Shown one piece after another: positions 5,518 through 38,253 of a stretch of 64,000 bases of DNA (position 1 is its first letter; each line of letters begins with the position of its first letter). The stretch is from Ruditapes philippinarum (Eukaryota). The stretch spans positions 1-64,000 of the forward strand of contig NW_026866443.1 in the NCBI RefSeq assembly GCF_026571515.1. Reading direction: 5' to 3'. The notes under the pieces were generated by a model that saw only the letters and a program-made list of their open reading frames with translations, was not told the origin of the DNA and did not search any database. Both the position numbers and the translations under genes were made by a program.

Positions 5518-5550
5518 TATAAAAACAGCTTTTTTCAAGATATATTTATT
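5518..5550 (+). promoter_or_regulatory. Core promoter of copy 1 (TATA + Inr-like)
   Basis: TATAAAA at 5518; A of TTATT at 5548, exactly 30 nt downstream; same spacing in all three copies. Confidence 0.6.
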
Positions 5551-5582
5551 ACAGAAGAGTTGTCTTCTAAATAACTACAACT

Positions 5583-6551
5583 ATGGGCTACAAACTTGTA
5601 TGTGTAATTCTCGGAATATGCTTCATAGCATCTGTATTCAAGTTGGAAGCGGGTGAGTTGTTTATTTGGTACTTATTATAACAAACATCATGTTTAAATC
5701 AAAACAATTTTCATAAATAATGTCATTTAATCATTGGTTTAATGTTTTTATTATTTTTTATTCATTAAACGATCTAAAGATGCTTGAAAATTAATACTTT
5801 ATTTCAAATGTTAATCCAAGGGATTGTAGCCTTGCAATTCATATTCTTACAAAAATACCAAAACATTTAAAAACCTCTTGCGGTCTTATATACCAGCAGC
5901 TTGATATTAAAACATTTGCACTTTGGCTTCAAATTAGGGGGAAATGAAATTCTTTAATTTATTAATAATATTATAAAGAGTGCATAAAATTTCGGGTGCC
6001 GAAATACAGATTTTAAGGGCTTTGAAGTCGACTTAAGTATTTATATCATTTTGTTATCTAACAAACTTCTTAATCATCATGCATGCAATTGTGTATCTGT
6101 AAATACAACATCTTCATTAAATACTAACAAAAGCGAATTTGCAAATTTTCAAGACTATATATTAAGGCTTTGTAGTTATATATTTATAACTCTTTTACAT
6201 ACAAAATAATTTCCTTTTCTCAAAAGTTATTTAGTTATTTTTTATCCATGAACGTTCGAAATTCTCTCCCCCCACCCCTTTTTCCCTTTCTCAACAGGGG
6301 TGTTGCTGAAAATAAATGTTAACCAATAAGTTTATTAACTGCTGTATATCTAAGTAACATATCTCTCATTAACTCAAATATTATGGCCATTGTTGATAAT
6401 CAACACTGAAAGTTTTGTATTCTTAGCCGCCGAAAAAAAGAAAGCCAACTTCCAAGAACCTGCCTTAGCCCCAGAGACATTTGCTCCCGAGGAATTTGCC
6501 GAGGAAGAGCGATTACAAAAAGAGAAAGATGCTAAACGACTGAGAAAATAA
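5583..6551 (+). CDS. Small secreted peptide precursor, copy 1 (64 aa; coding exons 5583-5652 and 6427-6551; non-coding exon from 6865)
   Basis: Exon 1 reads MGYKLVCVILGICFIASVFKLEA+G then GTGAGT donor (phase 1). Acceptor TTCTTAG at 6426. Exon 2 reads AAEKKKANFQEPALAPETFAPEEFAEEERLQKEKDAKRLRK*. Donor GTAATC at 6556, pyrimidine-rich acceptor at 6864, AATAAA at 6964. The same structure occurs in two paralogs. Confidence 0.8.
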
Positions 6552-7149
6552 CAAAGTAATCATTTGTCGAGTGCTTGTATTAGAATATTTTTATTCTGTT
6601 TATCCATGAACGTTTATAAAAATCCAGAATAGTAGAATAATGTCTAATGGTGTTTGTCCGTTAAGGAAAATGGTTCTTATTGAAATATGTAAACTTTTCT
6701 GTTTCGTTTCTGAAATAAAAGGAAATATTGCTAAGATTCAGTTGGTTGTATAATTCGTACACTACATTAATGTTTTTTTTTATATCCAATTGCTTTGATT
6801 AATGTCTAATTTCAGTTTTTTCAATTTCATTTCATAAATTACTTTTAATTCTTTTCCTTTTCAGACAGACGAAGCGCATGAAAATGAAGTGGAAAGCATA
6901 TTGAAAATTAGAAATGTACAACAATTTTGCTTGAAGTAATGAATAATATCATATGCCGAGTTTAATAAACCATTATCTGCAAATATTATGTCTTATTCTT
7001 ATTTGATTTTAAACACATTTATCTGTTTAATGTTAAATGAATCAAACATACTTTTATCAATGTTCACATCTGCTGCCAATACAGTTATAGCTAAATCACA
7101 ATTAAACATTACCAAACATCTTGTTTGAATCATATGATAAAACAGACTA

Positions 7150-7281
7150 TGGTTCTACTCAGGTGCCTGTTCGTGCCTGAAATAATGCACGGAAGGGCAC
7201 CTGAGGTCTTCCTCCACCAGTAAAGCTGGAACGTCGCCGAATGACCTATTCTGTGTCGGTGTGACTTAAAACAAAAAAAAA
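7150..7281 (+). mobile_element. 3' part of a tRNA-derived SINE
   Basis: CTACTCAGGTGCC...GGTCTTCCTCCACCAGTAAAGCTG matches the reverse complement of 35094-35170; ends in an A-rich tail. Confidence 0.85.
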
Positions 7282-9249
7282 ACCACAAATAAAACAGACT
7301 AATTCAAATGGTAAAAAGCCAGACAAGCAGGTATATTAATGGTATGTTACCAGGTTCTTCACGGTTGTTGTTGTGTTAAAATATTAGTTTACAAACCATA
7401 TGCTTGGCATATTGTCGTCTGCTAAAAATGTTTTAATTTCATAAAAACGTTCCCTCCAATAAAAGAGATTCCCGCCGCCCTTATGTTCACTCCCGGTTAT
7501 TGTTTTTCTTGTCTTCTGGGTGCCCTGCTGTGGTAGCTCGGGTGTATCGGGGGCTGCGTCCTGTGAACGTTGCCGTTGCCATGTTGAACTTTTATATCGT
7601 GTTTTTTTAACTAGCTTAGTACCTGACAAGATGCTGTGGTGCCCGGCTTCCTTTCTGGTAGCAAGTTTCATGGAAAGGCTTTCTGCTGGGAAGGAATTAG
7701 AAATTTGATCCCGAAGACCCGCATAACACTAATGGGCTGTTCCAGTAGATACACACAAAATGAAATCTATATGACGGGCACTTTTTTATCCTGTGTATCA
7801 ATTCTGTTGCTATTATACAATAGCTTTTAGTAGAAAAGTGAGCAATCTGTCGTTATGTCTTTGTTTCATTGTCTTTAACTTTCAAGGTGTAATTCTCACT
7901 TTCAATTTTCAAAAACAATACTTTTACCCATACTTTATCTTTATTTTTCGTGTAAATTTAAAGATAAAATATGCTCATCTTTGGATAATTTTTTTTTCAG
8001 AAATATATTAAAATCTAAACATAACCGCCAGTATTTATGACACAATATTGTGTGTAGGATTTAAAGCAAAAAATATCTACTTTGAGTTAAGCCAAAACTT
8101 GTTTATTTTATATTTACATAATGACTGTGTAGCAACTGTCAATATTTTCAAATATTATCTTTGAGCTTAGTATATCATTAAACACCAATTGTTAAAAAAT
8201 ATTAATAAAAAATAATACCAAACACAAATTTTTTTTCTTCCTATAAAACATTAAAACAAAAAAAGGGGTTTTTGTTCTTTGCTTTTTGATTTTTGGGATG
8301 TCTCCCAAAATTCCCAAAGTGGATTTCCCGATCGATGTAATACTTTTTAAATTCGGCACGGAAAAAGACTGATCGGGGAAAAAAACCCCAGTCCCTGTAA
8401 AATCAATTTTCCCAAAAACCGGAAAATAAAACAATTATATTTTAAAGACAAATATTTAAACAAATTTATGTCGTTTTTACTTTTTAATTAAATAATGCCC
8501 TTTGTAATTTTTATGGCAATATTAAAAATAATTTGGTATGTCATATTTTAAAAAGCTATTTTTTAAAAATTAACACGTCCCATTTCTTTTAACTAAAGGG
8601 CTGGTTTTAGCCGCCCCGGCTTTTCGTACTATATATTTATTTTCTTATCGGGACAATAAATAATTAATTAAATTATTGATTTTATTTGGCATTTTTTTTA
8701 TAATATTATTGGCTTAAGGTTTTCATCTGTACTTATAATGTTAGAGTCATGTAACACATGCAAAATGGCATTTGTCAATAAAGCATGCATGTCACTACCT
8801 TTGTATATGTATATTGAAGTGACATAAGTTGTTATCGAGGCTTTCAATATGTTGCTGGTTTTCCTAGAAGTAACAAAAATAATATTCGAACATATGTTGA
8901 CATACATATAATAATACATAAAACATATAATAATAAATGAGTGTACTGCTTTGAAACGTTTAACTCAACAGCAATGTTAATAAAAACAAATATCAAGCTA
9001 TAGATTCACACATAAATTTACAAATTGCGCTTTCAATCTTAATCAATACAATAGAACATTTGAAGTCACAACCTCTTCTTTTAACTTCTTAACTCAATTT
9101 TCACGATATCACGATATTTTATACGTAAAGTAACTGATTTGGTTCCTTCAAAATACTAAAAAATATTGTACAATGTAATATCCCTAAATTTCTGTAGTAT
9201 CACTAGTATAATCTACCCGGCATTTCAGTTAAAAAATCCTCCAGATACA

Positions 9250-9560
9250 CAATAAATATATCATAATGGTGTCCTAACCCTACATTGAAGTTCCATATTG
9301 ATTCTTTCGCTACATGCATTCCAATAGCCTCCGGCAATTACATGTAAATTCTGACTTATTCAAGTTGAAGTACTTCTTCTTTCCATACACCACCAATATT
9401 GAGGATCAAACTTCCAGAGCAAGTCGTTAACCTGCCTGCTATTGAATCCTTCAAACAGTTTCTGTGCTTCCTAAGCTCCAATCAGTTTTTTTACCGTGTA
9501 CAGCACAATTGTTCTACACTCTCGAGATCTTTTATCATGTTACTCCCTTTCACTTGTGGT
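9250..9560 (+). mobile_element. Degenerate 3' end of a CR1/L2-type LINE
   Basis: Reads YFFFPYTT..LPEQVVNLPAIESFK (with a frameshift), resembling the SFFPRT..WN.LP..VV....F-K C-terminus of CR1-group ORF2. Confidence 0.5.
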
Positions 9561-11185
9561 ATTGCTTATTAAAACTAATTGAGTTTTCACAACCATTACT
9601 GTGAAAGAGCAATAATTAAAGAGCAAATAAATAAATACAGACACAAATTTTACGATTTTCAAAATAACTTATAGCGCAGCGAGTAAAAATCATTTTTGCA
9701 TGCTTTATTGAATATACCTTGTATATAGCAAATAAAAATGTTTTTCATGGTTAACATGATTATAAATAGAGAACATAAAGCATGTTGCTTGGCATTTGCA
9801 AAAAATATTTTTTAAAAAAAAGCTTTAAACTGAATTTACTTGAAACTGGTGCCACAATTGACAAATGAAGCAAACGGTAAAATGTACGCCAAAAAATGAT
9901 AACAATATAAAATATGTTAAGAGGATTTTTAAGTTTTCAGTACTCCAAGTTGATGGAAACCTTACTTTTTAATCATGCCATAGATCAGAAAATGCAAAAA
10001 ACAACGAAATAGTAACTAAGTTAGGTTTTACACAGACTATTTCCAAGGTTTTACAAGTGTTTGATCAACTGGCTCATATTCTAAAGAAGATCCACCATTC
10101 TGTGAAAAATTATATTTCCCCCCGTAGACTGGCACATATCCCAAAGAAATTGATGCAGAAATAAAGCACTAGCATTTAGACACATTTGTCATGATAAAGT
10201 TACTTATAGCCCATGTTATCAACTTATAGCTTTACATTTTATGACCTCCCTTATCAATAGCTATGTAATTTAATAAACATTTTAGATTACTAAGAAATAC
10301 TTTAGTAACTATTAAGTCACTTTACATCTGTTTGCAAATACAAAACGTTTGATATTGACAAAGTCGTATTTAAGATATTACGTGCTTGTTGGACCACTTG
10401 TTGGAGACAAAAAAAAACAGAAGTTGTATATGAAGGCCGCGATATTGTGACAGTTTTTTCTAAGTGAAATAAGGTGAACATTAAACATCAGTATCTATCT
10501 GCATGTTCATATATTGATCTCAAACACATATTTGATCTAGATGTTAGGACAAGTATATCATACACATACATTTCTCTTTAACCATTTTAATCTATTATTT
10601 ACTTTGGTATCTAGTCTAGAAAAAATAATTTGGTACACACTTATCATCTCTGATCACTTTGTCAACGCCTATATATTTTGTCATTATGTTGCCGTTTAGT
10701 AGACATAAAATACATGTACTTTAATCAACCTAGATGAAGCCACTATGATCTTCATCTATTAGCAAGTTCGAGAAGGTAAATATTGACAAGGCTGTGTGTA
10801 CTTTGATATACATGTATTCTTAAAAGGGCACAAAAGACAAATAAAAGGACACTATCATGCAACAGAAGTTGTTTACGCGACATGTCAAAATGGTGACAAT
10901 TTTTAAGGTAAAATAAGATGAACCTTAACCATCAGTATCTTTCTGCATGTTGATTTACGACCTAAACGAACTAAATTTAGTTGAATATTTAATCAATTTC
11001 CAATTTCAGTTGGGGTTTAAATTAAGGTACTTTGATATACATATTAAGATTACTTTGGTATGCATATATTTTTTCTGTCAATATAAAGCCATTTAGGTAA
11101 GAGAAAATAATCACTTTAAACTTCCCGTAGCTATTTTGTTCGAAGACAAAGGATCGTTAAGACATGTCTTGGCTAAACGAACTAA

Positions 11186-14100
11186 AGGGCTTGGTACGGT
11201 TTGGGTCAATTTTGGCCCATCGGCAAAAAATATTCAAAATTTGATATATCAAAATTTAACTATATTTAAAACAAATGCAGCAAGATTGAGTCAGATATCT
11301 GTTTAGACAAAAAAGTTATAATAAATCAAAACAACCTATTAAGAAAATAAAAATACTACAGTTTGACGTCATCAACGTCACGTATTATTTTGAGCGCATC
11401 GCTTCGAGTAATTAAAAATATAATGACGCATATGTATTTTCTGATTTTTTTATCGTGTAATGCAAAAGAGTTGGTGATACATTTGATGTACATTTCTACC
11501 GTTCAATTACGATACGCAGACATAAATAATTAGTCACTGTGAAGTACATTAAAACAGACGAAAAGGAAGACATATACAACAGCCTTTATTTATATAATTT
11601 ACTTACCCTATTTATGAAGTGTAGGGCCTATTCAGTTACTGCTATTTTATAAAATACACAATTACTTTAACAAGTTCATAGCTAAATTTTCGGCACTGAA
11701 CCTTCTTCAGTTTTAAAAGGGCTAACCACCGAAATCTATGTACGAAAACCACCGAAATCTATGTACGAAAAAGGCACATATTCGTAATATTACCGCTATG
11801 ACAATATTTTTTTATTCAGTGGTTTTATGTTATAACCTATTTAGTAAAGTTCAGAACTTATATGTATGCACATGTTTGACTATCATTATCATTATTACAT
11901 CATCATTATTATTATTTTTATGATATTGATCTTTCACATAATCTGTAAGATGTATGCCTCGGTTACTTGACCTACCGGAATTGCCCGAATTACCGGAATC
12001 CGCGGGGACTTTACTAGAATCGACCTGTAATTTTGTTATTAATGAATTTTTAAAGAATAATTTGGCTTTTTTATAAGATATAAACATTATAAATGATATG
12101 TCAAAAGATTTTGTGATTAAAAAATAGATCTAAGATCGGAGAGTTACTGCCATACTGCCGGATTCGTCGAGGGACTGTGATTTGGTTATTTATGCATTTT
12201 AATAATATTTGTTTTGCCAGGTTTTTATAAAACTTAAACGTTATAATTGGTCTCCAAAGAAAAAGTGAAAAAAATATCGCTTTTAATTAACATTAACAGT
12301 GAAAATATTTAAAATCGGCGGAAACGGATAAACTGCCGGAATCGGCGAATCATTACCAAAATCGGCCTGTAGTTTGCTTATTTATGAATTTTTAACCAAT
12401 TTTCTTGCATCTTAAATTAAATAGAAAACGATATCAATGATATGTAAAACGATTTTTGTAAATAAAATCACTATTGATTAATAAAACAAGATATTTTAAT
12501 ATCAGCAGGTTACTGCCATACTGTCGGAAGGTTTACCGGAATCAGCCTAAAATTTGGTCTTTTTTGCACTTTTTAACGTTTGTTTTGCTTTTTTATTAAA
12601 TATAAACATTATCTATCATATTCAAAATAAGAATTTTGCAATTCACTTTTGATAAATAAAACAATCGAGTTACTGTCATACTGCCGAAAAAGTCGAATGA
12701 TTAACCTATTTTGAATTCCTGCCAAAACGTCATTACATTCACAGACGCTTGGGGGTCAGATCCTGCCCCCCCCCCCCAACGTGATACGTCCCTGTAAACA
12801 CTCTACCAAAACTATTTTAATATTTAAACACGAATGGGACATCTGCTACAACGATACAATTGGTTTTCAAACATTTTTTACATATCTGAAAAAATTACCT
12901 TTTAACCATCAAGTATACTTTATTGAGACTTGATGGTATACGGAATTTTTTCATATATGTAAAAAATGTTTGAAAACCATTTGTATCGTTGTATTAGATG
13001 TCCATTCGTGTTTAAATATTAAAATAGTTTTTGGTAGAGTGTTTACAGGGGCGTATCACGTTGGGGGGCAGGATCTGACCCCAAGCGTCTGTGATTACAT
13101 TAAAAAGGGAGATCACTTGGAAAACCACGTTCGTTGATTAATTAATGTCTATGTACTCGGTATATAGATTTTGTCATGTCTTTAATATTCCACGGGATGC
13201 AATACAGCTTGAATTAATTTTATACGAAACAAATAATTTTGAATTTTCCAAAACTTGAATACTGGATAGTTTCGTGTTTCATATGATATTTGTCGGCGAT
13301 CACCGCGGAGAACCTACTTTTAATATTTTAAGATGACGTTTAAAAACATAATTGAATTAATGAAATGAAATATTAAATAAAAAATAATACGTAGGAAAAG
13401 AAGGAAAACACATGTACACACACAAAAAGTCGGCATTGTTTAGTCGAAGTTTTTTGGGTTTTTTTTAGTATCTTTCAAAAACAGATCATCATTATAATAC
13501 GATGATGCAGATGCTAAAATGTTTATATTCTGTTAAAAAACTAAAATACAAACAGAACATGTAACTAGATTTAGTAAAAGATTTTTTTCTGTTACGGATT
13601 TCTTTCTCTTGCAGGGTATATATGCACGATTAATTTAAACTACCGTAGTCATTAAAACTAGTAGTTTGTTTTCATATAAAAATATTTTCAACTTGCTTAC
13701 ATGTAGAATACTGTTTTAATTGAAAAAAGAATAGGAAAAGGCAGTGATCAATCAACATAAACTTTCTTCCGGATAATTTACACTAGTATTTATCTTTCCT
13801 GTAAATGGATAATACCACATATTCCATTGTCAGACTTTGAAGGTGTCAAGTGCTGTGTGGCAGCTGTAAAAAAGTTGCCCCGTACTTCACTTCAGTGTTG
13901 TTATAATTTTCTGGTCCTTCGGGATCATTGTTGCCAGCACTATTAAGTGTTGAGAATTGAGTACCGCTCAAGCCGGTGCTAGGGGGCGTGAGGGATGTTG
14001 CACCTATTCATTATCCTCATGTACAGACTCAATCAAACCGAGTCTGCAATTCTTATGTAATTTTGTTGTGATTAATGCTTCCGAGGGGTCACTTTGTCTC

Positions 14101-15701
14101 CAGATTTTTGAATATTTAGATTACATATCTAACAACATAAAACATAAAATAGGTTTGAATTCCTTTTCCATTTATGATGTAAGAATACACATGAACACGT
14201 AAAAACAGTGCATAAAATTTCTTAGCTTTTTCAATGACATATACCATTGGTGCAACAATATTACTGTAATAAAATGAAAAATTATTTGCATATCAGGTAC
14301 AAAATTAACTCCGAAAGTTTCTTTATTTTCCCAGGGTTTTGTTTCAAAACAAGTTATGGATCGCGTAAAATATAGGTACAGTTGCCACAAAAAAGCTTTT
14401 TGAGGCTATATTCGCTCATAATTTTTCGTTTTTCATATTGTAATTGTAAATTCATATTATTTACCGGTGGGCCACAAAGTTTGAAATTCCTTATTTTACA
14501 AGGTAAGTATGCAAAAAACACATACATGCCATAATTTCAAGACTGATTTCTAGGACACTTTAAAAAATGTTTCTAAAATTAACAGAGCAGTATGTTGTAA
14601 CTTTACAGTAAAGCATGCGCTGTGCTTTGTCACTGTGGTAGCGTAAGGTATTCAGCATACCTATTTTTTTTATACCTGACCAATGTTTCATCTGACAAAT
14701 TAAAGAAAAAAAAATGTTAAACAGTGGCATAAAGTTTTTGAAGCAAGAGAGACTCGTATGTTAAAAATAATGCACAAAATTTCGACACTTCCAAGATAAT
14801 TGCAAGCATGCAAACATTTGAAGAACCTGTAAAATTATTTTATTGCAAATGATTAAAACAAAACCGCAACTAATGATCTATATTCAGAATTTTTTGACAA
14901 GATTTAATTTCACATCACCCTTCTAAATAAACTTTTGCTGGAGACAAGTGATTGACCCGTGCTAGAGATCATTTGGTGCGCTAAATGTGTCAATCATCAT
15001 TAAAGGGCGGTTGTATCAAAACTTCAAAAGTCTTTGCGGACGTGCGTACGTGACAAACTTCTAGGTAAATGTAGGCGGAGTCATCTATGCAGACATATGT
15101 TGACACACTTGCCCAGCAAACCAATATTTTAATTTTACGAGAAAGGTCACACATATTTATCAATCAGTGGATTAGTGTCAACATTTTTTGTGTATTACTA
15201 AATTTAATGTGTGTGGAAAATATATCTGATATAAATGTCTTAGAATAATTAACATGCAAATATTATTGCCTCTCCTACAACCAATATATACTCGATTACG
15301 CCCCTTACCAATCCGTCGCCATTTGCCAGTTATGTAAACAGCAGACTGACGGAGTGTAAACTTTGGGTAATTAACAGAAGTGCGCAAGCAGTAACCGCAA
15401 AATAGTAGGTGATAATTTAAAGCTAATATATTATGGTAATATAAAATGTAAAAACCTAAGCGGTTAAAAAATGCGTTAACCTGATATTTGTAGAATAACA
15501 CCAAAACTTTACCCATTTTAGCGAATTTTGTCCGAAATAGAGGACAAATGACGTCATCAACGTTGCCGCGATACAAAGGAACGTCAGTTTTTACTTGCAT
15601 ATATGTTGCTTTGTTAATTGACATGAAATGATTCATTTATATTCAATATTTAATTTCCTTAAAATTTTGGGCCAAAATCGACACAAAACGTACCTAGCCC
15701 C
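11186..15701. mobile_element. 4.5-kb non-autonomous TIR DNA transposon (Kolobok-like ends) with nested insertions
   Basis: Left end AGGGCTTGGTACGGTTTGGGTCAATTTTGGCCC; reverse complement of right end GGGGCTAGGTACGTTTTGTGTCGATTTTGGCCC. It splits AACGAACTAAA/TTTAGTTGAATATTTAATC, which is intact at 10965-10994. No transposase ORF seen. Confidence 0.75.
12740..13093. mobile_element. Fold-back MITE with 8-bp TSD ATTACATT (hAT- or P-like)
   Basis: ~160-bp arms CACAGACGCTTGGGG...CCCCAAGCGTCTGTG; TSD at 12732-12739 and 13094-13101. Confidence 0.9.
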
Positions 15702-17531
15702 TTTAGTTGAATATTTAATCTTTGGTGACAGCATACAATGGAAGACTTTTGTTTCTTGAATGTTTAAAAATTTATGAGTTTCCCGCTTCTGTTTTTCCCC
15801 CCTGAGAAATATATTTCTTTATTTTATTTAGCCATTCTAAAAAAGAATAAACACTTTTTCTGTAAAAGATATGAAAACAAGTTCAAGGAGGCATGGACAG
15901 TAGCTTGGGGATCTTCCAGTCCCTTATGAACGGGGTTGTCCCAAAACCCCAAATGCAAAATTTTTTTAAATTTTGGCGTTCTTTTAAAGGTTCTGTTTTT
16001 CCCTTTTTTTAAATTCAAATATGTGGTATTGCTTTAAAAAAACTAAAAAAGTTTTCAAATTTATTACTGTTGGAAAAAGTATGATTAAAGGAAACAAAAA
16101 AATTTCAAAATTTTATACACCCAAATTTTTCGATTTTCAAAAAAAAATTATAAACGGGAGCGATGAAACTTCCCTTTTTGCATTTTTTGAATATATCTTG
16201 TATAGCAAATAAAATGTTTTTCATGGTTAACATGATTATAAAAAGAGAACAGAAAGCATGTTGCTTGGCATGTGCAAAAACAATTTTTAAAAAGCTTTAA
16301 ATTGTAGTCCGAATTCTGTACTGGTGCCACAATTGACACATGGAGTAAACGGTAAGGTGTACGCCAAAAATGATTTTGTCTTCAGTACTCCTAGTTGATG
16401 CAAATCTGACTTTTTAATCATGTCATAGATTAGCTAAAGCATGAAAACGAAATAGCAGGTAACTGAAGTTAGCTCTTACACAGACTATTTCCAAGGTTTT
16501 ACAAAGTGTTTGATAAATTGGTACATATTCTATAGAAGATCCACAATTCTTTGAAAAATTATAGACTGAAATATAGTACTTAGGCTATCTATTTTTCGAA
16601 TCGAACATTTATTGTCTTGGCAATGATGTCGAAAATAGCATCACGGTCACATGGTATTGCTTCACTGAATATCAAGCAGCTTTGTACATAATTCAGTGCC
16701 TTGAACCTACACTTAAACACAATTGTCATGATATAGTTACTTATAGCCCATTTTGACAAATTATCTCTTTACATTTTGTGACCTTCCCTATCAATAGCTA
16801 TGTAATTTAATAAACATTTTGGCTTACCAAGAAGTACTTTACTTACTATTAAGTCACTTTGATTTACATCTGTTCGCAAGTACAAACAGTTTGATAATGA
16901 CAAGGTCGTATTTTGAAATATATCATGCTTGTTGGACCACTTGTTGGACACAAAAAAAGGCAACAGAAGTTGTACATGAAGGCCACAATATGATGACAGT
17001 TTATTTTAGTGAAATAAGATTAATCTTAAACATCAGTATCTCTCTGCATGCTCATATATTGATCTAAAACACATTTTTGATCTAGATGTTAGGACAAGTT
17101 TATCATACACATCCATTACTAGTTAATCATTTTTATCTATTATTTACTTTTTGGTATATAGTCTATAAAAATAATTTGGTACACACTTATCATCTCTGGT
17201 CACTTTGTCAACGTCTATATATTTTGTCAATATGTAGAAATAATAATAAAATACATGTACTTTAATCACCTTGAATGAAGCCAATATGATCCTCATCTAT
17301 TAGCAAGTTCGAGAAGGTAAATATTGACAAGTCTGTGTGTACTTGGATTTATTCTAAATAGGATACAAAGACAACTAGAAGGACACTATCACGCAACAGA
17401 AGTTGTTAACGAGATATGCCAATATGCTGACAGATTTCATCTTTTTTTAGGATGTAAAGCTATAACAACTTTAAAACATCTAGTCAAATTTAGTCCATCA
17501 TAAATAACTGTGGTCAGATAATTTGTTATGG

Positions 17532-17788
17532 TACGGTCATACTTGTCAGCTACGATGGTGAAAAATCGAAATAACGAAACCGCGATGGTAAAAGGTCGAA
17601 GGTACTGAGGTGAAAAAAATATATATATCAATTTTTTTATCATCGTGGTTTCGTTATTTCGTACTTTTGAATCTTCATCATCCTACTTCCGACTTTCCAC
17701 CATCGAGGTTTTATTGTTTCGACTTTCCATCATCGTGTTTTCGTTGTTTGTGTTATGCGTGTCACGACGTCCTAACGGGACACGGTAT
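17532..17788. mobile_element. Degenerate palindromic MITE with CGATGGTGAAAA/TTTCACCATCG subrepeats (also ~32229-32485, partial ~25677-25775)
   Basis: Inverted arrays of short subrepeats; TACGG...CCGT-like ends in the 32229 copy. Confidence 0.6.
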
Positions 17789-19449
17789 TAACGCAACAGA
17801 AGTTGTTTATGAAACTTCTCAATATAGTGACAGATTTCAAGGTAAAATTATATTACATTTTAAGTGCATGTTACAATATCGACCTCTTATTAAATGTAGA
17901 AACTAGATGCATGAAACGTTTTATTACATAATAACATTAATTAGTTTTAATTACTTTTTCATCTTATTATCAATATTAATCCATATTCAACCACTTTAAA
18001 TTTAATCTACACCAAGTTACTTTGGTATACTTACATCTATATCTATTCAAGCAAGTTCAAGAAGTTTAATAATTATATTGATCTATCCGAAATATTGGAC
18101 GCAGAAAACATGATTTACTCTTACGGCAGTGTAAGTTGTTGACGAGCTTCAGCAAAGCAAAATATGTTGTTTATATGATGCACATGTTAACACATCTAAC
18201 AAAATGTATAATTATAACTTGCATACTTCAAGATGAGTATCGTCTATATGTTATGTAATATGATGTTTATATATCCAAGAATTTTAAAAAATGAGTTGAG
18301 GATAAAAATATTATTTATAAATGCGACGAAAGCATAACCTAATGCGAACGTCCATCTAATGTTACAGTTCTTGTGTGTTATCAATTAATTTATGAAAGCC
18401 ACTTTTTATTTAGGATTACTTTGACCAGAATATGATATTTGCCACAGTAGTTCAACAATTTAGGTAACTCAAACGATCTTTCACTTGCTAGCAATGTTAT
18501 GTGAAGCAAACACAACACCAAAGTTATTACAGAAAATTAATATTTTAAAGTCTATTAGGAAAGATCATATAGATAACTAAAAACATCTGATTCTAGAATG
18601 CCCTGTGCTAAAGTCTTGTAACCTGTAACTGTCTAAGTTAAATAGCTAACTTGTACTTCTTTATAATTCCAATAACCATCATTCTTTTAACTAATTTAAA
18701 TATCAGAAGAAAAACTTAAATTGAGCATTCATAAGTAAAAGGTACATTCAGAGATGACGATGACTTGACTTAATTCTGATAAAATAGCCTGGCAAGTCTG
18801 CGGTGATATTGTCAAGTATACATTCAAAGGGTTAATTAACAAATTTGCTTATAGTTGTTTATGTCTACAAACATTTGTATTTGCATTCCAACCATTATTA
18901 TCAATACATTATTTTCTTGAGATTGTGTGTTAAAAGTCATAACGACTAGGACACAACAAATAACTTTCAATTATTACATTTTGTTCAAAACATGATGTTT
19001 GAAAATGTTAATGAAAAATACCTGAATTCAAATTGCTTTGCAACATTGCTTCAATACAAAAACAACATATTTTCTCGGGCAACGTAATTGTCTTTAAAAT
19101 GGTTCTCAATGTACGCTGTCTAAGAACGAGACCTTTTTATGTAAACTTCAATTTTTTTAAATTCAGATGCCATTCAAAACCATTTTTTAGAAATAAAAAG
19201 TAAATAATTCATTATAGTGTCATCAAAAAAATACAATTCAAATAATCATAATTCAAAATACAAAAGAAAATTCATATACTAGTATTGGGACTATGATACA
19301 CAAATAACATATATGTAACTATAAAATGTTGAATAACACAAGGTGTATTTTAACTATTACTAAGATGTGTTTATATTCTAAGCAATGGAGAATAATGAAC
19401 TACTATAAATTTAATCAATCAAACCCCTCTATATCCCCGCAAACAAAAA

Positions 19450-19900
19450 TATTCTTGTAAAAAATCCGAAAGAGCTAAAGCTAAGATATTTTGCATGAAA
19501 CATGGATGTCTACCATGTTTCTTGAAATAAAACCACAAGGATAAAATTTTGCCCCACCTAAGGGGGATCATTGATTTTCCTTATATGTATATAGTAAACA
19601 CTTAAAAATCTTCTTGTGACAATCCAAAAGCACTATTATATTTGATATTATATGTGGATAAAAAACTTCTTCTAGTAGATGTTTATCAAGTTTGTTTAAA
19701 TAAAAGACCTAGGGTCAAAATTGCCCCCGCCCCTGGTGGTCATTGATTTTCCGGTCATATACATGTATATAGTAAAAACGTAAAAAATCTTTTTGTGAAA
19801 ATGCAAAAAAAACTAGAGAGATATTTGGCATACAATTAGAAAACAACAACATCGAAACAATTTCTAAACCGCTTGTTCAATTTTGATATAATATTTGACA
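19450..19900 (-). repeat. Remnant of the ~150-bp HINE-internal tandem repeat (also ~25820-26280)
   Basis: Reverse complement of the AAAATCAATGACCCCCGGGGCGGGGCCAATTTTGACCC units at 61900-64000. Confidence 0.75.
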
Positions 19901-19914
19901 ACGTACAAAAATAA

Positions 19915-20740
19915 ATAAATAATAATTCTAACACTATCGGATTTTTTTCTATATAAACAAAGAAGGTCCGAAGCGTGCATTATTCTACAACAATGCACTC
20001 GCCGTTCTTATTACCTCCCTGTGTATTTTCACATTGAGGGCGCCATTTTGTTTAAAAAATCTGATAAATAAAAACATTTTTTGTCGAATTTTGTTGTGAA
20101 AGCTATCTAGAATGAAAGAAAACGGTCTAACTAAGAAAATGAATCCGAACACCAATATCTTTAATTCAGTCGTTAACGCTGTACAGACGTTTAAAGTGTT
20201 GTTTACGTGACGTCACAATGTAGCGCCAAACAGCACGTGCAAAACAATCAAATCAAGTACGCTATTTTAGTGTCGCAAACGAGTTAAGTTTTACATTTAT
20301 TTCACATATAATGATTTGTATTTCCCTTGAAAAATTAAAGAGTGAAATAAAGTAAACAAACAAAGATTTATCAACGTTATCAAAATGCCTTATTCTCTAA
20401 AGTTTCTACACATTGTAGATTTAACGACATTTTTTTTTTCAACCCACTGGAACAGCCTTTAAAGAACGTTTCTATTGGAAACTCTGAGGCCAAAACAAAT
20501 TTAACCACCAAACATAAAGTCCAACTTTATAATAATAATTATATTTTTTCTTGACGTGTTAGAATGGAAATAGATATTAATTCTTCGTGCATTATTGTAT
20601 AATAATGCACGTTTTTCGTTCAAATGCTTTGTAATTAATCACTCAGGCCTATCGGCCTTCGTGATTATATTACTACGCATTTGAACTCAAACCGTGCATT
20701 ATTCTACAACAATGCACTCAGAATTGATATCTATTTCCTA
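19915..20740. mobile_element. ~830-bp insertion ending in a ~175-bp palindrome
   Basis: Absent from the paralogous site at ~26295. 20565-20738 is GGAAATAGATATTAATTCT...AGAATTGATATCTATTTCC with nested GTGCATT..AATGCAC hairpins; a related core lies at 550-612. Confidence 0.7.
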
Positions 20741-21302
20741 AATAAAATGCTTCTTAAAATAGCAAAATAATATTTTGTTCCCTGTTTAAGTACATTAAAT
20801 AACATAGACATTCTATGTTACAACACTTTTTTTGGTGATCAACCATATGATAATGGAACCAATATAATCTTTCTGTAAGATATTTCATAAGATATAGATT
20901 TATACCCTTTAATAAGAGTCAAATTATTGTTTTTTAGTTACAGTCTTTTACATTTTAAAGAATATTACGAATAAGCGTGCCAATGCGCTCATTTAAAAGA
21001 CTGGGCCAAATTATGGAAAAAGTAGGCAATCTAATAATTTCGATGTCCGTCGTATGCAATTGCAGATTTGAGCTATCTTCAAATTATATTGTAAAACTCA
21101 CATATACTTTAAGTTGGTAAATATGATGTGACAGTTGGTACATTGTTTTATAATTTTCCGGAGCATTATTATTGTCTTTTAATTGGTTTATGATTATGAA
21201 ATATGCAATATGCACATGCACTGTCCTTGAACAAGACATTATATTTATATATTATTTGTACTATGCCTCAGATGTCACTCAAATTTAATTGTCAGAAATT
21301 GG

Positions 21303-21336
21303 TATAAATACAGCAACTTTTGAGATATATTCATTA
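21303..21336 (+). promoter_or_regulatory. Core promoter of copy 2 (TATA + Inr)
   Basis: TATAAATA at 21303; TCATT initiator-like motif with A at 21333 (+30). Confidence 0.65.
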
Positions 21337-21367
21337 CAGAAGAGAAATCTTCTAAATAACTACAAAA

Positions 21368-22241
21368 ATGGGCTGCAAACTTGTATGTGTGATTCTCGGA
21401 ATATGCTTAATAGCAACTGTCTTCGAGTTGGAAGCGGGTGAGTTGTTTATTTGGTAATTATTTTAATACAATCATGATTAAATCACAACAATTTTCATTA
21501 ATAATGTCATTTAATGATTGATTAAATGTTTAATCATTTTGATTCATTAAATTGTCTAAAGATGCATGAAAATTAAAGCTTTATTTCGTTTCACAATTCA
21601 AATGTTAATCCAAGTGATTGTATTTTGGCAAGTCATATTCTTATTTGTACAAAAATTAAACATTTAAAATTCGTCCTGGCTTATCTGCCAGCAACCTAAT
21701 TTTAAAACATTTGCACGTTTGATTTATATTTGAGGAAAAAGAAGGATCTCTTTAGTTTACAAATAAAAATTTAAGAGTACATAAAAGTTGGTTGTATTTA
21801 TAATATTTCGGGTGTCGAAATACATATTTAAATTGGCTTTAAAGTCAGATTAATTATCTATATATTTTATAATTAAACCTTTAAACTGTTTCATCATGTA
21901 GTTGTGTATTTGCATATTCAGCATCTTTGAAGATTACTTAATGACCATTGCTGAAATTCCACACTGATTATTTTACATTCTTAGCTTCCTTAGAGAAAGC
22001 CAAGCCCAGCCATCCTGCCTTAGCACAAAAGGAGAAAGCCAAAGCCCAAGAGAAAGCTTCCTCTGCTGCTGCGCCATGAGCTTCCGAGATTGAAAGCATC
22101 TCAACAATGAATGAAACCCTCTCAACAGGGAATGAAACACTCAGCTCCATCAATGTAGCCTTCCCAACAGGAAATGAAACACTCTCGACAGGGAATAAAA
22201 CCATCTCGAAATAAGACGAACATGAACGACAGAAAGAATAA
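21368..22241 (+). pseudogene. Small secreted peptide precursor, copy 2, with in-frame stops (truncated 54-aa product or pseudogene)
   Basis: Exon 1 21368-21437 reads MGCKLVCVILGICLIATVFELEA+G|GTGAGT. Exon 2 from 21985 reads ASLEKAKPSHPALAQKEKAKAQEKASSAAAP*(TGA 22077)ASEIESISTMNETLSTGNETLSSINVAFPTGNETLSTGNKTISK*(TAA 22212)DEHERQKE*(family stop 22239). Last exon from 22562, AATAAA at 22650. Confidence 0.7.
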
Positions 22242-22716
22242 CAAAGTAATCATTTGTTGTGTGCTTTTATTTGAAACATTATTCATTCCGTTTATCCTTT
22301 AACGTTTATTATGTTCTAAAATAGTAGAATAATGTCTGAATGTGTTCGCCCGTTAAGGAAAATGATTCCTATTGACATATGTAAACTGTTCTGTTTCGTT
22401 TCTAAAATAAAAAAAGAAACTGCTAAGATTAAGTTTTTATATACCTCATACATGACAGTAATGTTCTTTTATATACAATGGCGTTGATTAATCTTAGTAT
22501 TTTCAGTTGTGTTTTTATAGTTTCATATCAGAAATTACTTTCAATTCTTTTGCTGTTTCAGACAGACAAATCGAATGAAAAAGAAACAGAATGCGTATTG
22601 TAAATGAAAAATGGACAATAGCTTTGCTTGAAAATCATATGCTGAGTTAAATAAACAATTATATCCGCAATTATTATGTCTTATTCTTATTTTATTTGAA
22701 AAACATTCTTATAAAT

Positions 22717-23154
22717 ACAGTAGAATCCCTACTTAAGACCATCCCGGAATTAGGGAAGACAATTTCTAAAGAACGGACTATTCTAATCTTTATTTCAATG
22801 GCCACATGATCAAGAATTAAGAACACCCCGCTTACCACTTTCAAGACCACCATATTCAGTCCCAGTTCTTTTTTTCAATATTTTCAAAATTGATCATAAT
22901 AATTTTTTATTTGAAATGTGAAATAAGTACATCAGATAATAATTAATATTGAAATCAAACCCAAGGGAATTTAATATTAAATTTCAACGAGAATATGTTG
23001 TCCTCACATCAGTTTAAATATTATAATATACTTTAATTTTGTATTTGCCTGTTTAAATACAAGCAATGATAAGAATATCCACAAATGAGACCACCCGCCA
23101 TAAATACCCCTTTGATCCAGCCCGGTGGTGGTCTTTATTGAGGGTTTTTACTTA
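22717..23154. mobile_element. Degenerate Tc1/mariner-like MITE (TA-CAGTAGAATCCC end, AAGACCA subrepeats); partial copy at 28308-28555
   Basis: TA+CAGT terminus, repeated AAGACCA motifs and a degenerate inverted end GGTCTT..GAGGGTTTTTACT. Absent downstream of gene copy 1. Confidence 0.55.
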
Positions 23155-26100
23155 AGAAAACTAATTTTCACAACAGTTGTCAGTACAATTATAGTAAGAC
23201 CACATTACCAAACAACAACAAGTTTTTAAATATTTGAATCACATGATAAAGCAGAATAATCCAAACGGTAAAAAGCCAGCTAGCATGTAAAATGATATAA
23301 TCTTTCAAGGTTCTTCACTGGGTTTTTTTAAAACCACCAGTTTACAAAACATATGCTTGGCAGATTGTCGTCTGCTATAAATTGTTTAATTGCATAAAAT
23401 GTTCTCTCGCAGTAAAAGAGGGTTTTCTGTCAAATAGCTTAGTACCCGACAAGATGCTGTGGTGATCAGCTTCCTTTCTGGTAGCAAGTTGTTTAGAAAA
23501 GCTATCGAATTGGGAGGAACACCAATTTTGGCACCGAAGGCACATATAATACAATGGGACTGTTCAGATACAGACAAAAATTTGTATGACGGGCACCTTT
23601 TGATAATGTGTACCACTTTTGTTGTCATTATGCCATAGCATTAAGTAGGAATGTCAGCGATCTGTCGTTATGTCTTTGTAACATTGCTATAAATGTTATG
23701 GTGTATTTCTCTTTTAAATTGCCAATCCATCATTTGTCTTTACTTTTCGTTTAAATGTAAATTAAAAGTACACAATCTGTTACAAAATTTGATTCTTGAT
23801 ACACTAGCAAAATTGCAAATGATTAACGATTCTTAATTATCATTACCTACAAGATTATTTTCTTCACAGACTAGTATACAACATTTAAAACAACAAAAGT
23901 TTGTTAAATCGTTTTTTATTTTGGGAGTATGCGTAATTGCAAGTGTATTTAAGATGAAGCACATTATGTCTTTGTCGATATATTTTATCTCGACGCGGCA
24001 AAGACTACTCAGATTATGTAGTAGTATATGTAGTATAATATGAAGGGTATGTAGGTCACTTTAAAACTCAATTACTAATTAAGTTAACAAGTTGCATAGA
24101 GTACCCTTTCGCTAACTACTAGGCTGGTATACCCGTCCCACTAACAGTACAATTTATTTGCTTATCGAGATAACAAAATTTTGTTTCGCATTTTGATAAT
24201 AGTCATGGCTTTAAGTTGTTGTCTATACATTTATGTTAAAGTGAGGTAATGCTAGACACGCCAGAATGGCGTTTGTCAATAAAACATGTATGGGTAACAT
24301 ATGGCCACTACCTTTGTACATGTATATTGAAGTGACATAAGTTAACGAGACTTTTCAGTACATTACAAGTTTCCTAGAATAATTAAAAGATATTCGAACG
24401 TATGTTCACAAACATAAAACAACCATATTTATATTATGTTATAAGTATATTGCTTTGCAAAGTGTTACTCAACAGATAAGGTATTAAAACCATAGATTCA
24501 CATATAAATTTACAAAATGTACTTTTGATTTTAATCTATACACATGAAAACATATATCTAAACATATTGTATGATGTCCTGTGAAGTCAAAACAACTTCT
24601 TCTCGCTTCTTAACGCTATTATTCACGCTATTTTTATTATTAAGTAACTGATTTGGCCCCATCAAAATACTAAAACAAATTGTACAAGGTTAATACCTAT
24701 TTATTCACTTTGATTTACATCTGTTTGCAAGTACAAGAAGTTTAATAATGACAAGGCTCTATTTTAAGATATTAAATGATTGTTGGACAACTTGTTGGAC
24801 ACAAAAAGACATCAATGTCTCAATATGATGACAGTTTTCAAAGTGAAATAAGGTGAACTTTAAAACATCAGTAAATTTGTGCATGTTCATGTATTGATCT
24901 AAAACACAGGTTTAATATAGATGTTAATTAATACAATTTTATCATGCATATCCATTTCTATTTAATCATTTTTATCTATTATTTACTTTTTGGTATCTAG
25001 TCTAGAAAAAATAATTTGGTACACACTTATCATCTCTGATCACTTTGTCAACGCCTATATATTTTGTCATTATGTTGCCGTTTAGTAGACATAAAATACA
25101 TGTACTTTAATCAACCTAAATGAAGCCACTATGATCTTCATCTATTAGCAAGTTCGAGAAGGTAAATATTGACAAGGCTGTGTGTACTTTGATATACATG
25201 TATTCTTAAAAGGGCACAAAGACAAATAAAAGGACACTATCATGCAACAGAAGTTGTTTACGCGACATGTCAAAATGGTGACAATTTTCAAGGTAAAATA
25301 AGATGAACCTTAAACATCAGTATCTTTCTGCATGTTGATTTACGACCTAAACGAACTAAATTTAGATGAATATTTAATCACTTTCAGTTGGGGTTTAAAT
25401 TAAGCTACATTGATATACATATTAAAATTACTTTGGTATGCATATATATTTCTGTCAATATAAAGCCATTTTCCCGTAGCTATTGTGTTCGAAGACAAAT
25501 CATCGTTAAGACATGTCTTGCTTCTCTTATTTTACAAAAGTTCAGGTCGTGTTATAGAATCCATAAGGTACATATCTATTTTTAGGATGTAAAGCCATAA
25601 CAACTTTAAAACATCTAATCAAATCTGGTATTGGTACCACATAAATAACTTCGGTCAGATATTTTTTTGTTATGGTACAGCAATACGACGAAATAACGAA
25701 ACTGCAATGGTAAAAGGTCGAAAGTACTTTGTTGAAAACACGAAATTATTTCGTTATTCCGTATTTTTGACTTTTTGAACTTAAGATTTAATCAATCAAA
25801 CCCCTCTATAGCCCCGCAAAAAATCTTCTTGTAAAAAAACTCGAAAGAGCTAAAGCTAAGATATTTGGCATGAAACATGGATGTCAACCATTTTTCTTGA
25901 AATAAAACCCCTAGGTTCAAAATTGGCCCGCCCAAGGGGGTCATTGATTTTCCTTATATGTATATAGAAAACACTTAAAAAATTTCTTGTGACAATCCAA
26001 AGGCACTAATATATTTAATATTTGGCATGAAACACCTTCTAGTGGATGTTTATCAAGTTTGTTTAAATAAAAGCCCTAGGGCCAAAATTGTCCCCGCCCC

Positions 26101-26874
26101 AGGTGGTCATTGGTTTTCCGATCATATACATGTATATTGTAAAAACTTAAAAAATCTTTTCGTGAAAATACAAAAGAACTAGAGAGATGTTTTGCATAAA
26201 ATTAGAAAACAACAACATCTGAACAACACCTAAACCACTGATTCAATTTTAAAATTATTTTTCACAAAAACTTCCTTTGTGATAACGTACAAAAATAAAA
26301 TAAGACCCTTCTTAAAATATCAAAATAATTTTTTGTTCCGGAACATTTTATTCTGTTTAAGTACATTATTCATGTGTATTAGATAACATAGACATTATAT
26401 GTAACAACACTTTTTGGGTAATTAACAATATAGTAAGGGAAACAATATGAATTTTCTGTAAAAATATTTCATAAGATATAGATGTATACCCTTTAACAAG
26501 AGTCAAATTAGTCCATTGTAGTTTCAGTCTTTTACATTTTAAAGAACATTACGAATAATCGCGCCAATGCGCTCATTTAAAAGACAGAGAGTCAAATTAT
26601 GGAAAAAAAATTCGATGTCCTTCGTATGCAATTGCAGATTTGAGCTATCTTTAAGTTATAAATTAAAACACATATGTACTTTAAGCTGGTGATTATGATG
26701 TGACAGTTGGTACATTGTTTCATAACTTTCCGGATCATTGTTATTGTCTTTTAATTGGTTTATGATGATGAAATATGCAATATGCACATGCACTGTCCTA
26801 GAACAAGACATCGTATTTTTATATTATTTGTACTTTGCTTCAGATGTCACTCAAATTTAATTGTCCGAAACTTG

Positions 26875-26907
26875 TATAAATACAGCGACTTTTAAGATAT
26901 ATTTATT
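26875..26907 (+). promoter_or_regulatory. Core promoter of copy 3 (TATA + Inr-like)
   Basis: TATAAATA at 26875; TTATT with A at 26905 (+30). Confidence 0.6.
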
Positions 26908-26939
26908 ACAGAAGAGTTGTCTTCTAAATAACTACAACA

Positions 26940-27831
26940 ATGGGCTGCAAACTTGTATGTGTGATTCTAGGAATATGCTTCATGGCAACTGTCTTCGAGT
27001 TGGAAGCGGGTGAGTTGTTTATTTGGTATTTATTTTAATACAATCATGTTTAAATCACAACAATTTTCAATAATAATGTCATTTATTGATTGATTTAATG
27101 TTTCATTAAACGATTTGAAGATGCTTGAGAATTAAAGTTTTATTTCGTTTGACAATTCAAATGTTAATCCGAGGGAATGTATTCTGGCAAGTCATATTCT
27201 TATTTGAACAAAAACAAAACATTTAAAACTCGTCCTGGTTTATATGCCAGCAACTGAAAACATTTGCACTTTTGCTTTATATTGAGTAAAAATGGAACTC
27301 TTTAGTTTATAAATAAAATTATCAAGAGTGATAAAATTTGATTGTATTAACTGTATTGGGGGTGTCGAAATAAAGATTTTATTCGGCTTTGAAGTCGGAT
27401 TAATTATCTATACTATTTTTGTAACTTATTCTTTTAACTGTTTGATCAAGCCGTTGTGTATTTGGATATTCAACATCTTTGTAGAATAGTTAAAATGTGA
27501 ATTTGCAAACTTTTAAGACTGTACACTAACGCTTTGTAGTTTATAACTCTGTCTTCTCTTAACATGAGTTTCTCTGGAGATAAATGTTAATCATTCCGTT
27601 ATAAAGGTATCATTTAATTAACATATCTCTCTTGCACTCAAATATTAAGAACATTGCTGAAAATTCACTCTGAATATTTTTTTATTCTAAGCTTCCATAG
27701 AAGAAGCCAAGCCCAAAGAACCTGCCCCAGAGGAACTTGCTCCTGCTATTTCTCCTGCTATTGCTCCTGCTCCAGCACATGCTCCCAGGATATCTCAAAA
27801 AGAGGAGGAACATGAACGACAGAGAATATAA
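26940..27831 (+). CDS. Small secreted peptide precursor, copy 3 (~69 aa; coding exons 26940-27009 and 27692-27831; non-coding exon from 28151)
   Basis: Exon 1 reads MGCKLVCVILGICFMATVFELEA+G|GTGAGT. Exon 2 reads ASIEEAKPKEPAPEELAPAISPAIAPAPAHAPRISQKEEEHERQRI* (alternative in-frame acceptor at 27700). Donor at 27836, acceptor at 28150, AATAAA at 28239. Confidence 0.8.
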
Positions 27832-29597
27832 CAAAGTAATCATTTGTCATATGCTTTTATTAGAAACATTTTTCATTCTGTTTATCATTTACCGTTTATT
27901 ATATTCTCAAATAGTAGATAATGTCTAAAGGTGTTCGCCCGTTAAGGAAAATGGTTCTTATTGACATAATTATGTAAACTGTTCTGTTTCGTTTCAAAAG
28001 TAAAAGTTGATTCAGTTTTTTTATAACTTATACACTACAGTAATGTTCTTTTAGATCCAATGGCGTTGATTTATGTCTAATCTCAGTATTTTCAGGTGTA
28101 ATTTTATAGTTTCATTTCAGAAATAACTTTTGATTCTTTTGCTGTTTCAGACAGACGAAGTGCATGAAAAAAATGGAAGGCGTATTGCAAATGAGAAATG
28201 GACAATAGCTTTGCTTGAGAAATTTTATACTAAGTTAAAATAAACAATTATATGAGCAAATATTATGTCTTATTCATATTTGATTTAAAACACATGTTTC
28301 TTATGAATACAGTAGAATCCCTTTTTAAGACCATCCCGTTATGAAGACCATATTTAAAGAACGGACTATTTTGATCTTTATTTAAATGGTCACATGATCA
28401 AGAATCAAGACTACCCCGCTATGAAGACCATATTTAAAGAACGGACTACCTCGATCTTTATTTCAATGGTCACATGATGAAGAATTAAGACTACTACGCT
28501 TATCTACTACCAAGACCGCCAGTGTCCCAGTTCTTTCAATATTTTCAAATTTGAGCAAACTACAAATGTTTCTGAACATTTCAATACTCAAGGACATACT
28601 ATCCAGAATTTCTCTTTTATGTCTCTTGATAAAGTAAGACATCCTTGGAAAAGTCAAAAGGCAACGGGCACACAGTAGACCGAAATCGAAACTGGGGTCA
28701 AAACAAATGGATATAGATGCGTTGAAATGAAGAACAGAAGCATATCTTTATATGTCGTAAAAGCAGACTAAAGAAAAGAGATAAAACTGTATCGGTTATA
28801 TGATAGTATAATTATATCTCTAAGCTCCCTGTAAATTTCAATAAAATTCAAAGATAAAGCAGTCATATGAATCTGCTCGAGTGTCAAAATAAACAAACCA
28901 ATATGAGAAAGTCATGAATGATAATTGAAATATGATGTTTAAATGAAAAAGTTCAGTTGTCATCATTATTTCGCATTTTTGGTCCTTTATGATTCACTTC
29001 ACAATCTTTGTATGTAGATGCATTTTAGCCAACAAAAGATAGGTCCGACTTATAGAATTTTTGCCTCCCTTTCCAAATATGGCAGCCATTTTCTCGAATT
29101 TTTACAATTTTTACCTCGCTTGTCAAAAGTGATAGCCATTTTGGGGGTCAATATTCTGTATAATATATTTGACAAACTATTGAAAAAATGAACAGCTGTC
29201 AAATTATTTTGTACTATGCAGCAAAATATAAGTATAGCATCAATTTGTAAAAGATGTTTAGTAGTTGTCATGAAGATGATAGAATTATGAGAGTTTAATA
29301 TCTTAAGCACATGCTATAATGGAAATTATCCCAAAAATGGAGGCCAGGGGAGGTCATAATAGCTATGTTTGAAGCATCTATAAACCATTTTGGTAATTAT
29401 CCAACATCTAACCTGATGTATTTATATCTGTATCTTATGATGTCCCGTTGATGAAGAGTTCAAGATGTTACCTAAATCTGCGTTTAAGCAACATGTAACT
29501 GGTGAAGCTGTTGTAATGAAATCAAACTTGTGCGTGAAGCATTGATCATGTTACCATGACAATGAGCGTTTTGAAAATATTACTGTTACCAGCTCTT

Positions 29598-38219: not shown

Positions 38220-38253
38220 GGATCCGGTCAAGGCCCTAAAATACTGTGACATT

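Follow-up and report, generated by a model that had tools for sequence, protein, structure and literature searches.

No adaptive immunity is known in bivalves, and these animals appear to depend on secreted peptides, in large sets that are specific to a lineage and vary between individuals. A design of this kind is known from the conotoxin superfamilies, which are defined by a conserved signal and combine a hypervariable mature peptide with varied cysteine frameworks and tandem duplication. Among the bivalves, the CRP-I family of Mytilus combines a conserved pre-pro region with a hypervariable mature part and includes pseudogenes as well as members without Cys. Its genes consist of four exons, in which a phase-1 intron splits the signal after about 17 amino acids (aa) and a pro-region exon and a phase-2 intron follow; the family is restricted to Mytiloida (PMC4558851). 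The myticalins are strongly cationic, Pro/Arg/Tyr-rich peptides with a K-R site and an anionic C-terminal extension; their signal follows the consensus MKGxxLLLLTIxxALCMIxECEG, exon 1 holds 5' untranslated region (UTR) only, and a phase-1 intron lies in the C-terminal extension (PMC5577615). Here we describe three small genes (genes 1-3) of the Manila clam, Ruditapes philippinarum, found in positions 1 to 64,000 of contig NW_026866443.1 (assembly GCF_026571515.1); this whole stretch of 64,000 nucleotides (nt) is referred to as the window. Gene 1 is transcribed and spliced as predicted, and the three genes are likely to belong to a clam superfamily of secreted peptides that share a leader exon.

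Layout of genes 1-3 and the transcript of gene 1

The leader pattern occurs three times on the + strand of the window, with ATG at 5583, 21368 and 26940 for genes 1, 2 and 3, respectively (0 expected in shuffles). A sequence-only reading of this DNA had proposed three colinear three-exon genes, each with a TATA box, a 23-aa leader, a phase-1 GTGAGT donor and an AATAAA-bearing last exon. When all three stretches were read and aligned, the genes were found at the proposed places and each of these parts was seen in all three copies. The sequences make genes 1-3 tandem paralogues, copies of one small three-exon gene driven by a TATA box, and all the features given below for them are on the + strand.

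The TATA boxes fit TATAAA(A/T)A and lie at 5518-5525 (TATAAAAA, gene 1), 21303-21310 (gene 2) and 26875-26882 (gene 3; TATAAATA in both), each 65 nt 5' of the ATG. Exon 1 (5554-5652, 21339-21437 and 26911-27009; the starts in genes 2 and 3 placed by homology) encodes the hydrophobic leader, whose consensus is MG(Y/C)KLVCVILGIC(F/L)(I/M)A(S/T)VF(K/E)LEA and whose individual forms are MGYKLVCVILGICFIASVFKLEA in gene 1, MGCKLVCVILGICLIATVFELEA in gene 2 and MGCKLVCVILGICFMATVFELEA in gene 3. The exon closes with the first base of codon 24 at the phase-1 donor G/GTGAGT, after 5652, 21437 and 27009. Intron 1 measures 547-774 nt, and its acceptors put the start of exon 2 at 6427, 21985 and 27692. 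Exon 2 ends at 6555, 22245 and 27835, where the donor AAAG/GTAATC follows 4 nt past the shared TAA. Its coding lengths are 125, 257 and 140 nt, with differences that are multiples of 3. It lacks Cys and is rich in Ala, Pro, Glu and Lys in all three genes, so that the composition proposed from the sequence alone holds. Intron 2 interrupts the 3' UTR and is 309-316 nt long. Exon 3, which is 3' UTR only, covers 6865-6983, 22562-22668 and 28151-28257 (predicted in genes 2 and 3, with the ends by homology), with AATAAA at 6965-6970, 22650 and 28239-28244. In the alignment no copy has lost the start codon, its Kozak-like context or any of the four splice sites.

The transcript of gene 1 is spliced and polyadenylated, and its exons are exactly those predicted. 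Four runs were mapped onto 5300-7300, the gene 1 region. In X11 (RNA-Seq, labelled 'mollusc metagenome'), a 371-nt contig with a k-mer depth of 52.8 matches 5554-5651, 6426-6555 and 6865-6983 with 0 mismatches and then continues into a loose end of 24 A. Both joints are GT..AG (the joint 5651/6426 is equivalent to 5652/6427), and both recur in run X1 from a separate study; the junctions 5652/6427 and 6555/6865 of the sequence-only reading are thus confirmed. Fourteen RNA-like runs from 8 studies contain 0.14-0.22 of the sampled words of 5500-7000, about the share of that stretch taken up by the three exons. The transcript starts ~30 nt past the TATA box (the box lies 36 nt 5' of the first base of the contig) and is polyadenylated after 6983, 13 nt past AATAAA. 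The mRNA of ~350 nt comprises a 29-nt 5' UTR, a 64-codon open reading frame (ORF) ending with TAA at 6549-6551, and a 3' UTR whose intron follows 4 nt after the stop. The 64-aa precursor carries a 41-aa Cys-free peptide after the leader (AAEKKKANFQEP...DAKRLRK), with a net charge of ~0. No letters of the gene 2 or gene 3 paralogues (88% likeness) were seen in the RNA contigs of gene 1 exon 1; contigs lose rare variants, so their lack is no evidence against the expression of genes 2 and 3.

Just past gene 1, a SINE-like (short interspersed) element with an A-rich tail (7150-7272) shows thousands-fold coverage on both strands in all four RNA runs and has no Rfam match. Its many variants and loose ends mark it as a dispersed repeat of very high abundance.

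The predicted precursor of gene 3 is 69 aa long. Its 46-aa Cys-free, Pro/Ala-rich part (ASIEEAKPKEP...EHERQRI, charge -3) ends with TAA at 27829-27831 and contains a 12-nt tandem repeat of 2.9 copies at 27737-27771 (Tandem Repeats Finder). The sequence-only reading had also assigned all three genes a shared stop position, which stands for genes 1 and 3 and does not for gene 2, where an in-frame TGA at 22077 and a TAA at 22212 precede the shared TAA (22239-22241). Exon 2 of gene 2 is 261 nt long, not about 130, and the precursor of the window allele has 54 aa. The exon contains a 21-nt (7-codon) tandem repeat of 5.6 copies, with NETLSTG units, at 22091-22207 (Tandem Repeats Finder). Contig C14575, a haplotig of 21756-25262 with 96% identity to it, has TGG in place of the TGA at 22077; the exon-2 ORF of this allele is open to the TAA at 22212 and predicts a 75-aa peptide with four N-x-S/T sequons. 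The haplotig also carries, at its positions 547-4384, a 3.8-kb insertion in the 3'-UTR intron of gene 2 that is absent from the window allele, a structural polymorphism within the gene.

Divergence of the mature exon

Over the aligned columns of genes 1-3, identity is 81-92% in the promoter, 90-96% in exon 1, 83-86% in intron 1, 84-89% in intron 2 and 81-86% in exon 3, and it falls to 72-76% in exon 2, below the values of both introns. In the middle of this exon an alignment is practically impossible (19-26% identity with gaps counted), in agreement with the earlier remark that the introns (83-89%) align better than this part. The unalignable middle consists largely of copy-specific in-frame repeats, namely those described above for genes 2 and 3; gene 1 has none. 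Much of the variability of exon 2 comes from in-frame repeat expansion and not from substitutions alone.

The two coding exons differ in the ratios of non-synonymous to synonymous change (Nei-Gojobori, genes 1-3). For the leader in exon 1, dN/dS is 0.34-0.56, whereas in the last 11 codons of exon 2 the proportion of non-synonymous differences (pN, 0.24-0.45) exceeds that of synonymous ones (pS, 0.17-0.20), with tiny counts. Together with the divergence above that of the introns, these values support the fast evolution that had been claimed for the mature exon. The hypervariability of exon 2 is real; slippage and indels contribute to it, as do substitutions that are either weakly constrained or positively selected. 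The signal exon, by contrast, would be under mild purifying selection. A 'hypervariable mature exon' can accordingly stem from in-frame tandem-repeat expansion as well as from substitutions.

Leader exons elsewhere in the genome

The assembly used for the genome searches comprises 1.4 Gb in 15,874 contigs, and the window corresponds to C14930:1-64000. A DNA search of the whole assembly finds only three copies of the type of genes 1-3 (A type), plus one partial haplotig. Genome searches that began with the 23-aa leader and went on to profiles built from 6 and from 12 leaders found about 14 leader exons (E values from 4e-12 to 1e-4), that is genes 1-3 and 11 further loci. Every inspected hit begins with ATG and ends with a phase-1 GT donor at the same position, and the superfamily pattern reads M-x-x-K-(L/F)-x-x-x-(I/V)-(L/F)-G-x-C-(L/F)-I-A.... 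Between the A-type leaders and those of the Cys-rich genes described next, identity is 50-70% over 22-23 aa.

Behind six of these leaders (on contigs C2777, C7871, C8023, C4276, C8747 and C1007), a phase-1 acceptor downstream opens a predicted ORF of 40-47 codons with 6-8 Cys, six of them invariant in the array C-x-C-x5-C-x(n)-C-x6-CC. Some family members thus appear, from ORF prediction, to encode Cys-rich peptides. A K-R site is present near the N-terminus in four of the five C-type ORFs. A GT follows the stops of the Cys-rich ORFs within 1-4 nt (TAAG/GTGACG), and the role of such a GT as a donor is proven by RNA in gene 1 only. The C-terminal tails before the stop are alike in Cys-rich (..CCKSQERQK, ..CCCHERFTQ) and Cys-free members (..EEHERQRI, ..DEHERQKE). 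For the leader gene on C7543, an exon 2 was looked for and not found. Intron 1 of the Cys-rich gene on C1007 contains, at 5150-5700, a fold-back element with long inverted repeats that resembles a miniature inverted-repeat transposable element.

Further leader exons lie in the window itself. The fourth, of B type (MSCKFVFLILGVCLIASVFALDH), is at 48420-48489 (+), with a phase-1 donor A/GTATGT and E = 2.9e-11 against the 12-leader profile. A candidate exon 2 of the B-type gene at 49467-49565 (+) reads RKNEKLNQANAGASGQQAQGNSLTDDERPAKG up to its stop; the twin unit and C7586b retain it with an in-frame 6-nt deletion, and unit C7586a lacks it. Another B-type exon-2 candidate at 50503 was rejected, as its indels relative to the paralogue C7586a are not multiples of 3. 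The twin of the B-type leader exon (53424-53494, +) belongs to the 5-kb tandem duplicate and contains a 1-nt insertion that shifts the frame into a stop; it is probably a pseudogene or an assembly error. A leader-exon relic (..ILGVCVIASVFKMKH), with neither ATG nor GT donor, is located at 23912-23962 (+) and is present on the haplotig C14575 too.

The superfamily, which would be restricted to the clam, can be pictured as a leader exon, a phase-1 intron and a single mature-peptide exon with a GT almost directly after the stop. It would grow by segmental tandem duplication, after which the mature exon would diversify by the processes named for genes 1-3. The duplicated units are collinear over 2-5.5 kb.

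Repeated blocks at 9549-11094, 15710-18519, 24697-25471 and 30370-33213 are downstream of and collinear with genes 1-3, and the match between the units of genes 1 and 3 extends for about 5.5 kb. A fourth block, near 16-18 kb, stands without an adjoining gene and may mark a lost copy. The segments 47779-51665 and 52773-56638 form the 5-kb tandem duplication (96-99% identical) that carries the B-type leader exons, and contig C7586 holds a related array of units with 80-88% identity to it. An intronless ORF of 389 aa for a rhodopsin-type G protein-coupled receptor lies at 56422-57591 (-; 7tm_1, E = 1.4e-19), and an 85-aa ORF in the neighbouring duplicate unit (51449-51706, -) copies its C-terminal tail. 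A LINE-like (long interspersed) element occupies 37062-40137 (+); its ORF1 is of coiled-coil type, and the ORF behind it has an endonuclease/exonuclease/phosphatase domain.

The searches for relatives were run exon by exon. A Pfam scan of four exon-2 peptides returned no family. Gene 1 exon 2, compared with 5.8 billion proteins, matched only a 53-aa genomic read-through ORF (P0001), and neither the Cys-rich exon of C1007 nor the alignment of the six Cys-rich exons had a homologue in the protein collection. The leader profile found none at E <= 0.001 among 1.84 billion representatives, a search of little power with 23 positions. The ESM Atlas gave no usable match. For a Cys-rich paralogue, the AlphaFold2 model reached a mean confidence (pLDDT) of 68, and Foldseek against the PDB found nothing below E = 7. 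The Pfam Myticin family PF10690 has no match in the genome, but neither has it one in the control genomes, which makes this negative uninformative. In the literature none of four leader strings was found, and publications on Manila clam and Cys-rich antimicrobial peptides contain no described family that fits. The family is apparently lineage-restricted and undescribed, and the view of the sequence-only reading that it was an unrecognised, lineage-specific one is upheld by the lack of a Pfam family, protein homologue, fold match or published leader string.

Nature of the peptides and comparison with known families

By inspection, the leader is laid out like a signal peptide, with n-, h- and c-regions: K4 is followed by 15 uncharged residues (Kyte-Doolittle mean 2.8-3.1) and then by KLEA or ELEA. 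Cleavage sites IAS/V and LEA/A fit the -3/-1 rule of small residues, and the 15-residue h-region is at the long end of the 7-15 range for signal peptides. This layout supports the secreted product proposed earlier, and we infer from it that the 23-aa leader is a cleaved signal peptide and that the peptides are secreted. The signal peptide would send a Cys-free, charged and probably disordered peptide of 31-75 aa into the secretory pathway. The net charges of the products are -0.2, +2.9 and -3.0; because they stay between -3 and +3, the A-type peptides are not classical cationic antimicrobial peptides. Their most likely role, judged from bivalve families built in the same way, would be that of extracellular effectors in host defence or at mucosal surfaces, with tissue- or condition-specific expression; we put this specific role forward tentatively, as less likely than not.

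As a whole, the observations are best explained if genes 1-3 are the Cys-free branch of a secreted-peptide superfamily with a common leader exon, which we consider likely. A number of points weigh against it. Cleavage of the leader and secretion are read from sequence, and the A-type peptides are of low complexity and not cationic. RNA support is confined to gene 1, genes 2 and 3 and the Cys-rich relatives being predicted models, and two deep raw-read RNA runs (X22 and X24) show essentially no expression of gene 1, which therefore depends on tissue or condition. When exon 2 is compared between Cys-rich and Cys-free members, no frame yields significant similarity, so the link between the A-type and Cys-rich genes rests on the leader, the intron phase and the layout. 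The C-type genes lack the TATA box of the A type and may have an extra 5' exon. Lastly, gene 2 carries a nonsense polymorphism (TGA or TGG at 22077), and four of the five allelic differences in its exon 2 are non-synonymous or nonsense, which would also fit decay. Genes 1-3 could be Cys-less derivatives of a Cys-rich family, still transcribed from an intact promoter, with a functionless peptide and a drifting exon 2. Such decay would account for the two in-frame stops of gene 2, for pN at least equal to pS at the alignable end of exon 2, for the low-complexity repeats in its middle and for the frameshifted twin and relic leaders in the window; Cys-free 'like' sequences and pseudogenes are known from mussel CRP-I as well (PMC4558851). 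However, many indels have left the frame of genes 1 and 3 open between the phase-1 acceptor and the stop that both use, with lengths that differ by multiples of 3, the start codon, its context and the splice sites have been kept in all three copies, and the mRNA of gene 1 is well covered in X11 and present in runs from 8 studies. We regard decay as unlikely.

The Cys-free peptides might have arisen by overprinting, through a frameshift of an ancestral Cys-rich exon 2. TGC and TGT codons read one base later become GCN (Ala), the -1 frame of exon 2 contains 4, 5 and 7 Cys in genes 1, 2 and 3, and that of gene 2 ends in ...FLCCCAMSFRD before its stop, compared with ...LVCCCHERFTQ in the paralogue on C1007. 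A codon-shuffle control for these Cys gave p = 0.15, 0.09 and 0.037 in three non-independent genes and leaves a frameshift origin unsupported; we find it improbable. If it were true, the 3'-UTR intron right after the stop would expose premature stops in a slippage-prone exon to nonsense-mediated decay. The composition of exon 2 (Cys-free, Pro/Ala-rich, repetitive and charged), the four sequons of the long gene 2 allele and the expression limited to some libraries would also suit small matrix, mucus, adhesive or shell-associated components rather than an effector. Products of 31-75 aa are nonetheless very short for matrix proteins and have neither a Gly/Tyr/dihydroxyphenylalanine (DOPA)-type nor an acidic Asp-rich motif, and their relatives are small Cys-rich peptides behind K-R sites in a toxin- or antimicrobial-like layout; a structural role seems improbable to us. 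It is more improbable still that the transcript acts as an RNA, or that the hydrophobic N-terminus anchors a micro-protein in the membrane. The ORF is indeed short, with 64 codons, coding is backed by neither a homologue nor a domain, and the h-region is long for a signal peptide. Against this, the same leader precedes candidate 6-Cys ORFs, and disulfide-rich peptides of such kind are normally secreted. The frame is kept across the paralogues, an Rfam scan of 5300-7600 gave no match, and the stop 4 nt before the last intron would be expected of a translated ORF that escapes nonsense-mediated decay.

Standard annotation misses most peptides of this sort, since their ORFs are tiny, split by introns and without homologues. 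Gene 1 provides an RNA-backed gene model for one such family outside the mussels, and the leader exon with its phase-1 donor serves as a search key that recovers about 14 members, candidate 6-Cys peptides included. If bioactive, the peptides would offer new templates for antimicrobial or signalling peptides; if not, they would be a clean example of Cys-rich effector families shedding their fold.

With regard to the known systems, the clam family resembles MgCRP-I in being a multigene, taxonomically restricted bivalve family of short peptides (secreted in MgCRP-I, presumably so here), with a conserved signal, a hypervariable mature region in one exon and a phase-1 intron at the signal. A K-R before the Cys-rich part (here in the Cys-rich relatives), pseudogenes and members without any cysteine (MgCRP-I 23) are likewise common to both. 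In contrast to the four exons of CRP-I, genes 1-3 have three, with the whole 22-23-aa leader in exon 1, the mature peptide in the next exon and 3' UTR only in the last. The cysteine array of CRP-I is C-C-CC-C-C, whereas genes 1-3 have none and the Cys-rich relatives show C-C-C-C-CC, and the leader profile, whose 23 positions cannot reach significance in so large a set, had no hit among the 1.84 billion representatives. With the myticalins and modiocalins, genes 1-3 share linear Cys-free peptides, a conserved signal and a hypervariable central region, as well as three exons, nonsense-bearing pseudogenes and variation between individuals (PMC5577615). They differ from the myticalins in their net charge of -3 to +3 and in lacking the K-R site and acidic tail; the myticalin signal is unrelated to MG(Y/C)KLVCVILGIC..., and the clam leader is in exon 1 together with the 5' UTR. 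The conotoxins of cone snails are analogous in their working, with no homology: a bivalve has no venom apparatus, the clam genes lack a separate pro-region exon, and genes 1-3 lack cysteines. Judged by sequence, the clam genes work like CRP-I and the myticalins and are not members of either family, from which the cysteine array, the charge, the signal consensus and the exon layout set them apart.

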